Of a DNA stretch of 64,000 nucleotides, positions 61,055 through 62,943 are shown piece by piece. The first letter of the stretch is position 1. Every line of letters starts with the position of its first letter. A model generated the notes under the pieces. That model saw only the letters and a program-made list of their open reading frames with translations. It was not told the DNA's origin and searched no databases. A program made the position numbers and the translations under genes. The stretch is from sequence record NC_026927.1, one strand, 5' to 3'.

Positions 61055-61461
61055 CCCTGGAACTCAAAGACTGGTTGAATAGTTTAAACATGAGTAAGGA
61101 AGACCTTATTGATGGAGATCCTGATGTGGAGAAAGAGTATCCACCATTCATTGTCAATAAGTGTATGTCTGGTCAGATGGACGCACTTATGTTTGCTAAT
61201 GAGATGAATAAGTTCCCCTCACTAGATAAAAAGTTACAATATGATTTTTATCTAAATAGTTTGCGGAAGAGAAAGCGTTTCTCTCCTTGGTTAAGGAAGG
61301 ATAAGATTAAACACCTTGAGACCGTTCGTAAGTTTTATGGCTTTTCCACTGAAAAAGCAGAACAAGCTTTGAATATTTTATCCAATGAACAACTTGACTT
61401 TATCTATGATAAGCTTGACACTGGGGGAACCAAACCATGCAAACGGACGAAAGGGGGGTAG
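61051..61461 (+). CDS. gp62: Clamp loader small subunit gp62
   Basis: YPPFIVNKCMS, QYDFYLNSLRKRKRFSPW and YGFSTEKA motifs. Confidence 0.92.
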   Translation: MTLELKDWLNSLNMSKEDLIDGDPDVEKEYPPFIVNKCMSGQMDALMFANEMNKFPSLDKKLQYDFYLNSLRKRKRFSPWLRKDKIKHLETVRKFYGFSTEKAEQALNILSNEQLDFIYDKLDTGGTKPCKRTKGG

Positions 61462-61865
61462 TATCTTGGGACCCCTCATATATGATAGAAGTATTTTTGT
61501 CAGAACCTGACGACTTCCTAAAGGTACGAGAAACTCTTACTCGTATTGGTGTGGCATCTCGCAAAGAGAAGAAGATATATCAGTCTTGTCATATTCTACA
61601 TAAACAGGGAAGATACTTTATAGTTCATTTTAAGGAACTCTTTGCCCTTGATGGTAAGCATACTACAATTACCTTGAATGATATACAGAGACGCAATCGT
61701 ATTGTTAAACTACTATCCGATTGGAACTTGATTGAAGTTTCAGATAGTATCGATATTACAGATGTTGCCCCTCTGAATCAAATAAAAGTTCTCTCATATA
61801 AAGAAAAAGAAGACTGGATACTAGAACCGAAATATAACATTGGAAGTGTGAAACGTTCAGAATAA
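61437..61865 (+). CDS. regA: Translational repressor RegA
   Basis: DDFLKVRETLTRIGVAS and QSCHILHKQGRYFIVHFKELFALDG motifs. Confidence 0.95.
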   Translation: MQTDERGVVSWDPSYMIEVFLSEPDDFLKVRETLTRIGVASRKEKKIYQSCHILHKQGRYFIVHFKELFALDGKHTTITLNDIQRRNRIVKLLSDWNLIEVSDSIDITDVAPLNQIKVLSYKEKEDWILEPKYNIGSVKRSE

Positions 61866-61873
61866 CAGGGAGG

Positions 61874-61897
61874 GGGGGTATCCACACCCCCTTTTTT
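61874..61897 (+). terminator. Rho-independent terminator after regA
   Basis: GGGGGT-atccac-ACCCCC followed by T6. Confidence 0.75.
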
Positions 61898-61917: not shown

Positions 61918-61984
61918 CATAAATAGATGAGTAGTTGCCACTCAGGGACTACACCTTATACATCTCGCTTATTAGGAGAAACAC
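61918..61984 (+). promoter_or_regulatory. Late promoter-like CATAAATA and two-hairpin hsp20 leader (ROSE-like thermometer candidate)
   Basis: Hairpin 1: GTAGT/ACTAC at 61931-61952. Hairpin 2: TCTCGCT-TATT-AGGAGA at 61963-61979 pairs the SD with a bulged G. Confidence 0.6.
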
Positions 61985-62428
61985 ATGTCTGGATTAGCAC
62001 GCTATTATGGTTCTGGGGATATTGAGAAGTTCCTCAAGGACGTTGATAAGTATTCAATCGGAATGGATGAATGGTTCCATAGGTTCGGAGCACTTCACCA
62101 AACAGAAGCAAACTACCCACCCTACAACGTTATTCAGGAGAATGCAGTCTCCTATCGTGTAGAGGTTGCAGTTGCTGGATTTGCAACAAAAGAACTAGAA
62201 GTATTCACAGAGAACAACAAACTCTACGTGGAGGGTCAGAAGGAACTGGCGGAACCTAAGGAGGGTGAGTCCTACGTTCATCGTGGAGTGGCTGCAAGGT
62301 CCTTTAAGAGGGTCTGGACCATCTCTGATGACGTGGAAGTGAAGGACGTGGAGGTTTCCAATGGTCTCCTCACCATCCGACTCTCTCGTATCGTTCCTGA
62401 CCACCAGAAGAGACGTTCCTATCTCTGA
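61985..62428 (+). CDS. hsp20: Small heat shock protein Hsp20
   Basis: NYPPYN, YRVEVAVAGF, YVHRGVAARSFKR and NGLLTIRL (alpha-crystallin domain). Confidence 0.93.
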   Translation: MSGLARYYGSGDIEKFLKDVDKYSIGMDEWFHRFGALHQTEANYPPYNVIQENAVSYRVEVAVAGFATKELEVFTENNKLYVEGQKELAEPKEGESYVHRGVAARSFKRVWTISDDVEVKDVEVSNGLLTIRLSRIVPDHQKRRSYL

Positions 62429-62489: not shown

Positions 62490-62526
62490 GGGGGGTCCTG
62501 TCACAAAACAGGGTTGCCCCCTTTTT
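62490..62526 (+). terminator. Probable terminator after hsp20 (coordinates approximate)
   Basis: A G run and CCTGT...ACAGG stem closing with a C run and T tract. Confidence 0.6.
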
Positions 62527-62556
62527 GGTGCATGTTATAATATAGTATAAACTAAA

Positions 62557-62943
62557 ATGAACAATGATTATGATAGGGAACTTCCTTCCCCAACCGGATC
62601 TACGGGGGCAGTTGAACTAATGATTGAATCTATTGACCAGATGAGCAACAATGATCCAGTAGTAAAACTAGTTCTACTGAAGAATAATGAAACTATTATT
62701 GCTGAGGTTCGTGAGAGTATTGATGGAAGTAGTGTTCAGCTCATTGACCCTCGTGTAGTTCTACTACAGGCAGCAAGACCATCTGATGACGGACAGACCA
62801 CAACAACTGCCATCTCATATACCGACTGGTTACCTTTGTCTGAGAGTAGAAACTTCACTATTGCTGGTGATTATGTGGTCCTTATCACTGATCCCATTGA
62901 AAGTTTAGTAGAAAGTTATACACAGGCACGACAAAATGGATGA
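62557..62943 (+). CDS. Small Sm/SH3-like hypothetical protein
   Basis: VVKLVLLKNNETIIAEV...LIDP...WLP pattern; TGTTATAAT at 62533-62541. Confidence 0.6.
   Translation: MNNDYDRELPSPTGSTGAVELMIESIDQMSNNDPVVKLVLLKNNETIIAEVRESIDGSSVQLIDPRVVLLQAARPSDDGQTTTTAISYTDWLPLSESRNFTIAGDYVVLITDPIESLVESYTQARQNG

Follow-up and report, generated by a model that had tools for sequence, protein, structure and literature searches.

The 64,000-nucleotide stretch of DNA analysed here (the window) is identical to record positions 62001-126000 of Synechococcus phage ACG-2014f (NC_026927 / KJ019059), a T4-like cyanomyovirus of the Kyanoviridae. Between its regA gene (61437-61865) and its annotated Hsp20 gene (61985-62428) there is a short leader, which is the subject of this study. 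The features at the locus are listed below in window coordinates; individual base pairs are named here by the last two digits of their 619xx positions.

61868..61897, + strand: intrinsic terminator after regA, found by terminator scan; a 12-pair stem and then a T run (the regA ORF ends at 61865)
61918..61925, + strand: promoter box CATAAATA, which fits the cyanophage late-promoter consensus NATAAATA (PMC2984593); predicted start at about 61931
61928..61983, + strand: match to covariance model R1 (39.1 bits, E 2.5e-9), the sole match in the 64-kb window
61931..61952, + strand: hairpin 1, predicted by RNAfold; pairs G31-C52 to C39-G45, with a 6-bp lower stem closing with U36.G47
61953..61962, + strand: linker, A/C/U-rich and unpaired in RNAfold
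61963..61979, + strand: hairpin 2; anti-Shine-Dalgarno strand UCUC-G-CU (UCGCU core 61965-61969) with the Shine-Dalgarno strand AG-GAGA (61974-61979), loop UAUU
61985..62428, + strand: hsp20, encoding a 147-aa alpha-crystallin small heat-shock protein of IbpA-like class A type; annotated as Hsp20 in NC_026927
62490..62526, + strand: tentative terminator-like end of the hsp20 transcription unit, recognised by eye as G-rich and C-rich arms and then a T run

The terminator at 61868..61897 separates hsp20 from the upstream operon; the terminator-like site at 62490..62526 was not flagged by the terminator scan. Directly after the latter, and 16 nt before a DUF6561 gene at 62557, there is a sigma-70-like promoter (62514-62541: TTGCCC, 16 nt, TATAAT, with TG ahead of the -10). 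The Hsp20 protein itself matches Pfam HSP20 (57 bits) and aligns with the ROSE-linked small heat-shock proteins (sHSPs) of alphaproteobacteria; in a published phylogeny the cyanophage sHSPs adjoin bacterial class A, away from the host sHSPs (PMC3827213).

Immediately upstream of the gene, UCUCGCU (61963-61969), UAUU (61970-61973) and AGGAGA (61974-61979) follow one another, and AACAC then leads to the ATG (61985-61987). The original prediction was that this is a ROSE-like RNA thermometer, in which UCUCGCU forms six pairs with the Shine-Dalgarno (SD) sequence around a bulged G61967, with a second hairpin upstream and the AUG 5 nt downstream. This anatomy stands: the bases read as had been stated, RNAfold returns the same pairs (U63-A79, C64-G78, U65-A77, C66-G76, C68-G75 and U69-A74) and leaves G61967 unpaired in the MFE and centroid structures alike, hairpin 1 is found at 61931-61952, and hairpin 2 ends 5 nt ahead of the ATG, leaving the AUG free. 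The pentamer UCGCU (61965-61969) likewise fits the U(U/C)GCU motif that had been invoked, and its partner is AGGA (61974-61977) of the SD. Hairpin 2 has a predicted stability of -4.1 kcal/mol at 37 C. The two hairpins share a local design, since hairpin 1 also has a U.G pair (U36.G47) followed by an unpaired G (61937) and then C-G pairs (C38-G46 and C39-G45), beneath a loop of ACUCA.

Folding of the window sequence gave z-scores of -1.3 (31 nt), -4.3 (27-nt cut) and -1.8 (57 nt), and hsp20 ranked 21st for predicted SD masking among the 55 annotated genes in the window; extending the fold by 20-45 nt of coding sequence brought in codons 2-5 as competing partners of the SD. One such alternative is a hairpin at 61967-61998, which pairs the SD (G75, G76, A77) with codon 2 (UCU) and competes with the ROSE-type hairpin in folds that extend into the gene. 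Because the z-scores are modest, the SD has a competing partner and the rank is only 21 of 55, single-sequence folding cannot carry the claim, and from the window sequence alone the exclusion of chance would be marginal. The SD itself is unusual for ACG-2014f: a full AGGAG precedes only 2 of the 55 annotated starts, those of hsp20 and of the tail tube gene (38463), and 27 of these starts lack any SD-like motif within 18 nt. As most of the phage genes are without a strong SD, the importance of SD masking in the host is uncertain.

The argument for a conserved RNA element therefore comes from relatives, for which we assembled three sets of hsp20 loci: 80 IMG/VR loci found with the window protein (53-100% identity), 16 named phages, and 80 further marine loci found with the S-RIM8 protein. 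The 173 loci with at least 72 nt of upstream DNA gave 115 distinct leaders, 111 of which fit a hairpin-2 template of NNN-Y-G-CU, a loop of 3-8 nt and AG-G-NNN, and 108 of which fit templates for both hairpins, despite the relatives' proteins being 38-64% identical to the window Hsp20. All four leaders that fail the template keep the CUCGCU core but have CGGAG or UGGAG in place of AGGAG, so that the A expected opposite the last U of the core is C or U. The Y position makes a C-G pair in 96 of the 111 fitting leaders and U.G in 14, the G-C-U that follows is invariant in 61 of 61 aligned leaders, and the linker of the relatives is 5-12 nt long and A/C-rich. S-TIM5 retains hairpin 2 only.

Both stems covary. 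In a register-free test, sequences were picked solely by their invariant anchors, and no register was chosen for the stems under test. The lower five pairs of hairpin 1 were then paired in 86.5% of cases, compared with 60.7 +/- 1.6% when partners were shuffled (maximum 65.9% in 5000 shuffles); in hairpin 2 the two pairs that lie beneath Y-G were formed in 109 of 109 leaders, by UA (97), AU (11) or UG (1) at one position and by CG (97) or GC (12) at the other. Besides the prevailing (U/A)CU/AGA, at least three other lower stems occur: a freshwater clade has AGA/UCU, S-RSM4 and S-CAM4 have GU/AC, and S-TIM5 has CCA/UGG. The stem sequences of hairpin 1 vary freely provided that pairing holds. On gapless alignments the covariation score was 0.364 versus 0.141 for hairpin 1 (43 sequences) and 0.275 versus 0.095 for hairpin 2 (32 sequences); none of 500 shuffles reached either value and slid controls lay far lower. 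RNAalifold predicts both hairpins, including the unpaired G, on the gapless sub-alignments; it returns no structure for either the MAFFT alignment (A2) or the model-fitted one (A4), both of which have one-column register errors between loop-length groups, and owing to these errors the pair count on A4 serves as a conservative figure only. In S-RIM8 (locus positions 380-393), and in similar leaders ending in AGGAGC, the predicted stability slightly favours a slipped helix GCUUU/GGAGC (-3.4 kcal/mol), in which the 'bulged' G is paired, over the register with the bulge; the SD is masked either way.

We trained a covariance model (R1) on 61 phage hsp20 leaders. It finds the window leader as its only match there, gives a single match in a 197-kb sister genome, and has a match immediately ahead of hsp20 in every one of 78 additional marine loci from the IMG/VR set fetched with the S-RIM8 protein; these 78 loci lie outside the set from which R1 was built, yet S-RIM8-type leaders are in the model, so this is not a strictly independent test. 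With one match per genome searched and 78 of 78 loci matched, the element is therefore specific to hsp20. By these comparisons almost all phage copies of the gene have kept the leader in front of them, and the relatives speak clearly for more than chance.

Transcription of the leader is suggested by the promoter box. With the usual T4 late-promoter spacing, which we take to apply here, the CATAAATA box would direct a start at G61931, where hairpin 1 begins. Of the 108 distinct leaders, 92 have a TAAATA or TATAAT-like box whose 3' end lies 1-6 nt upstream of hairpin 1, and from this spacing we infer that hairpin 1 lies at the mRNA 5' end. Contigs from RNA libraries of three marine studies, derived from close relatives, cover hsp20 and its leader. 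Their left ends lie at 61941, at 61947 and, in one contig, before 61920; one of them reaches upstream past the predicted start by about 20 nt. Such contigs cannot place a transcription start site (TSS), and DNA carry-over is possible. The thermometer proposal had been staked on the TSS not lying downstream of 61965; on this point the contigs, which include the leader from 61941-61947 or further upstream, speak against a start solely downstream of 61965, while leaving the position of the TSS itself to the promoter prediction. A literature search found no published TSS or temporal class for cyanophage hsp20. Marine RNA libraries made by oligo-dT or polyA selection also contain contigs over hsp20 of near-identical phages (window 61920-62428). 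This would not be expected of phage mRNA; internal priming at A-rich sites, decay products bearing poly(A) or DNA carry-over are possible causes.

How closely the leader resembles known ROSE elements was examined with Rfam. Among its 4227 families, one, ROSE_3, aligns over the full length of its model with the hsp20 leaders of S-SM2, S-SCSM1 and a further locus (L008), at 24.9, 24.8 and 22.6 bits respectively (E 0.026 in 2.4 kb); these scores are below the ROSE_3 gathering score of 43. The window leader has no Rfam ROSE match even at E<=10, over 2 kb or 101 nt, and a ROSE_3 search of the sister genome gave nothing useful. The only weak Rfam match at the window leader, to Mu-gpT-DE (12 bits), was taken as chance. 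We also scanned bacterial genomes by exact pattern, combining the hairpin-1 motif with TYGCT; among the 80 loci listed 7 are sHSP leaders, and the rest are mostly chance matches in GC-rich genomes. At least seven alphaproteobacteria have the hairpin-1 motif and TYGCT directly upstream of an sHSP gene, the proteins being 32-40% identical to phage Hsp20; a match in Pseudomonas japonica was rejected as it lies inside a gene. The alphaproteobacterial leaders score weakly with R1 (10-14 bits), and the seven among the listed matches are themselves missed by Rfam at its cut-offs. Six alphaproteobacterial sHSP leaders (L100, L104, L138, L143, L154 and L168) have classical ROSE motifs and draw no Rfam ROSE report even at E<=0.5, the Shinella leader (L155) alone reaching 32.9 bits with ROSE_3. 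The Rfam ROSE models thus look too narrow.

The closest counterpart is the short ROSE element of Pseudomonas ibpA (ROSE_3, RF02523; Krajewski et al. 2013, PMC3669281), which shares with the phage leader an architecture of two hairpins only, an A/C-rich unpaired linker and a free AUG. Both leaders are about 55-65 nt long and stand upstream of an IbpA-like sHSP gene. Hairpin I is in both cases stable, with a U.G pair, a bulged G and then C-C/G-G, and hairpin II in both sets CUYGCU on AGGAG around an unpaired G; the printed ROSE_3 consensus (GGAUGCC...GGGUCC with its bulged G, then CUcGCu...AGgAG) is nearly that of the phages. The differences are that phage hairpin II has neither the two additional pairs at the top nor G-C clamps at its flanks, and is about half as stable (-4.1 versus -7.8 kcal/mol), that phage scores with ROSE_3 are at most 24.9 bits against the cut-off of 43 with the window unmatched, and that the phage leader follows a late-type or sigma-70-type box and not a heat-shock promoter. 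The habitat of the phage host, which we take to be at about 10-28 C, is also unlike the setting of Pseudomonas ibpA.

Classical ROSE elements (RF00435) have the same GGAUGCC...GGGUCC in their penultimate hairpin and the same sensor, (G)UCGCU.../...AGGA(C) with an unpaired G; the GUCGCU/AGGAC variant of S-RSM4 and S-CAM4 is identical in its core to the Mesorhizobium and Kaistia leaders. They differ in having 3-4 hairpins, and sensor hairpins that are long (-8 to -12 kcal/mol) and often span the start codon (PMC3669281). A cyanobacterial precedent should also be considered, as masking of a ribosome-binding site can work in cyanobacteria because their hsp17-type thermometers do so. To our knowledge, the hsp17-type thermometers are without the U(U/C)GCU motif and without a bulged G opposite the SD. 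As in the phages, a short sHSP leader masks the ribosome-binding site in Synechocystis hsp17, but it does so with a single hairpin in contrast to the two-hairpin ROSE form (PMC3669281), and the phage sHSPs are not of the host type (PMC3827213).

Membership of the ROSE-like class, as originally proposed, is borne out by an sHSP leader in which the SD hairpin with its unpaired G, the upstream hairpin and the free AUG are all present and conserved; judged on sequence and predicted structure, the phage hsp20 leader is a true relative of ROSE RNA thermometers. Since ROSE-like leaders precede bacterial sHSP genes, and since the phage proteins fall with class A in the phylogeny, it is simplest to suppose that the gene was captured along with its leader, most likely from a proteobacterial class-A sHSP (ibpA-like) locus, with the phage's own promoter added.

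We propose that hsp20 would be read as its own short transcript, from the CATAAATA box (61918-61925) to the terminator-like site near 62526, and that its leader of roughly 53 nt would act as a two-hairpin ROSE-type element. Hairpin 1, at or adjoining the 5' end and stable, would shield the mRNA and aid the folding of hairpin 2, as the counterpart of short-ROSE hairpin I. Hairpin 2 would sequester the SD AGGAGA by UCUCGCU, with G61967 unpaired and the AUG free; in the cold this weak, imperfect helix would curb 30S binding, and warming would open it to give more Hsp20. The two-hairpin ROSE-like leader of Pseudomonas, which also has a free AUG, is a proven thermometer in which hairpin II melts and hairpin I does not; there, hairpin II alone is sufficient and deletion of the bulged G locks repression (PMC3669281). 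Because the phage architecture is so like that of the Pseudomonas thermometer, the same mechanism is the most probable one in the phage, and we give a probability of about 0.65 to the leader acting as a ROSE-type thermometer in this way. Such a phage would probably be tying chaperone production to temperature or to protein stress.

The main doubt on the thermometer reading, from folding models, is the stability of hairpin 2. Its -4.1 kcal/mol in the window lies outside the range of validated sensor hairpins, and its median across the phages is -1.8 kcal/mol when template pairs only are scored. The ROSE_3 consensus has -7.8 kcal/mol and alphaproteobacterial sensors have -8 to -12, so that the phage hairpin is a third to half as stable as the latter. 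Nearest-neighbour folding from 5 to 50 C gives a gradual change with no sharp opening of the SD, in a model that omits non-canonical pairs and ribosome competition. The weakness of hairpin 2 could reflect tuning to a host living at 10-28 C or, equally, a fixed attenuator.

That second possibility amounts to a ROSE relative without temperature sensing, in which hairpin 1 stabilises the mRNA and hairpin 2 is a fixed, modest damper that sets the dose of Hsp20 late in infection. It would account for a hairpin 2 that is very weak and for predicted SD accessibility that is nearly flat across 5-50 C, it accords with the proposal by the Pseudomonas authors that a 5'-terminal hairpin I is an mRNA stabiliser (PMC3669281), and temporal control is already supplied by the phage promoter. 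A plain attenuator, however, needs neither the unpaired G nor the exact Y-G-C-U, yet GCU is kept in 61 of 61 leaders and the bulged geometry in 111 of 115; it is this bulged G that makes a ROSE helix meltable, its deletion locking repression (PMC3669281). We regard a fixed damper as unlikely.

A different reading gives the leader the role, main or additional, of an operator bound by Hsp20: free Hsp20 would attach to its own 5' UTR and repress translation, aggregates would titrate it away, and output would track protein damage instead of temperature, as has been shown for E. coli IbpA. Gammaproteobacterial IbpA does repress its own translation through a ROSE-type 5' UTR, for which Arg93 is required, and this residue is common in the alpha- and gammaproteobacterial IbpAs that carry RNA thermometers (PMC10474464). 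The phage resembles that system in having a ROSE-type leader on an IbpA-like gene and an Arg in the corresponding alpha-crystallin stretch: the IbpA-like phage Hsp20s keep an invariant Arg in an aligned G-[IV]-A-x-R-x-F stretch, which on our reading would be IbpA R93, the alignment having been made to alphaproteobacterial sHSPs and not to E. coli IbpA. The sequence of both bulged-G hairpins is also conserved beyond what pairing needs, as would suit a protein site. Set against this, the stem sequences of hairpin 1 are free to vary while paired, and in E. coli autoregulation adds to the thermometer instead of replacing it. By analogy, Hsp20 autoregulation may act in the phage instead of or besides the thermometer, but we consider this quite improbable.

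The conserved AAACTCGCTT... stretch might alternatively be a DNA site for host PhoB (a Pho box) or a translational operator for RegA. The homologous stretch in S-PM2d has been predicted as a Pho box, but the S-PM2d hsp20 upstream fragment bound no PhoB in EMSA and the gene was unresponsive to low phosphate in RNA-seq (PMC10976474). The covarying stems, moreover, indicate an RNA structure and not a DNA site. For RegA there is the position of regA as the upstream neighbour in ACG-2014f and several other phages, but many leader-bearing phages have different upstream neighbours; RegA sites are usually located in the SD-to-AUG spacer, and here that spacer is not conserved. Given the PhoB negatives in S-PM2d, the covarying stems and the varied neighbours, we reject both as very improbable, PhoB being largely refuted. 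Finally, the possibility that an AU-rich leader merely happens to fold around its strong SD, to which the modest z-scores and the middling rank of SD masking lend themselves, is refuted by the comparative data, namely conservation with compensatory changes over 115 leaders, one R1 match per phage genome searched, and a ROSE_3 likeness that spans both hairpins.

Returning to the thermometer reading, a ROSE-type device is here attached to a core gene of T4-like cyanophages, which are among the most abundant ocean viruses, and it also occurs in at least one jumbo phage of a proteobacterium. If the leader works, these viruses would read temperature or protein stress directly in translation, which would bear on how infection outcome varies with sea temperature, and the locus would be an example of a gene captured together with its RNA regulator and then driven by a phage promoter. 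Its weak hairpin would be a natural cool-range ROSE sensor, useful for understanding and engineering RNA thermometers. A full-text search found no paper linking cyanophage or phage hsp20 to an RNA thermometer or to ROSE, and a 2024 survey of ROSE-like elements leaves phages unmentioned; as far as we found in the literature, ROSE elements have been described only from alpha- and gammaproteobacteria.

The jumbo phage in question is Ralstonia phage RsoM2USA (MG752970), a 344-kb phage of a betaproteobacterium, in which the same leader (locus positions 230-297) precedes an Hsp20-like gene annotated as hypothetical: a TAAATA box, a bulged-G hairpin 1 and then UCUUGCUU/AAGGAGA. As RsoM2USA carries this leader, the cassette is not confined to cyanophages. 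We tentatively suggest, as a possibility that we rate rather low, that promoter box, ROSE-type leader and class-A sHSP form one cassette in unrelated large phages (cyanomyoviruses, S-TIM5 in part, and RsoM2USA), whose hairpins may serve both as a low-temperature thermosensor and as an operator for Hsp20 autorepression. If this dual duty is real, the amount of chaperone made while virions assemble would scale with warming and with aggregation load alike.

The leader also bears on the annotation of hsp20 genes in named phages. In Cyanophage Syn10 (HQ634191; locus 247-739) the leader is complete and an ATG stands at position 304 of the locus, yet the hsp20 CDS is unannotated; the protein match begins at 401, 97 nt later and in a different frame, so this hsp20 looks frameshifted or affected by a sequencing error. 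Annotated starts conflict with the leader-supported ATG in S-SRM01 (350 versus 401) and P-HM2 (314 versus 386), in both cases lying upstream of it, and hsp20 of S-SSM4 is annotated from a GTG at locus position 449, downstream of the ATG at 401.
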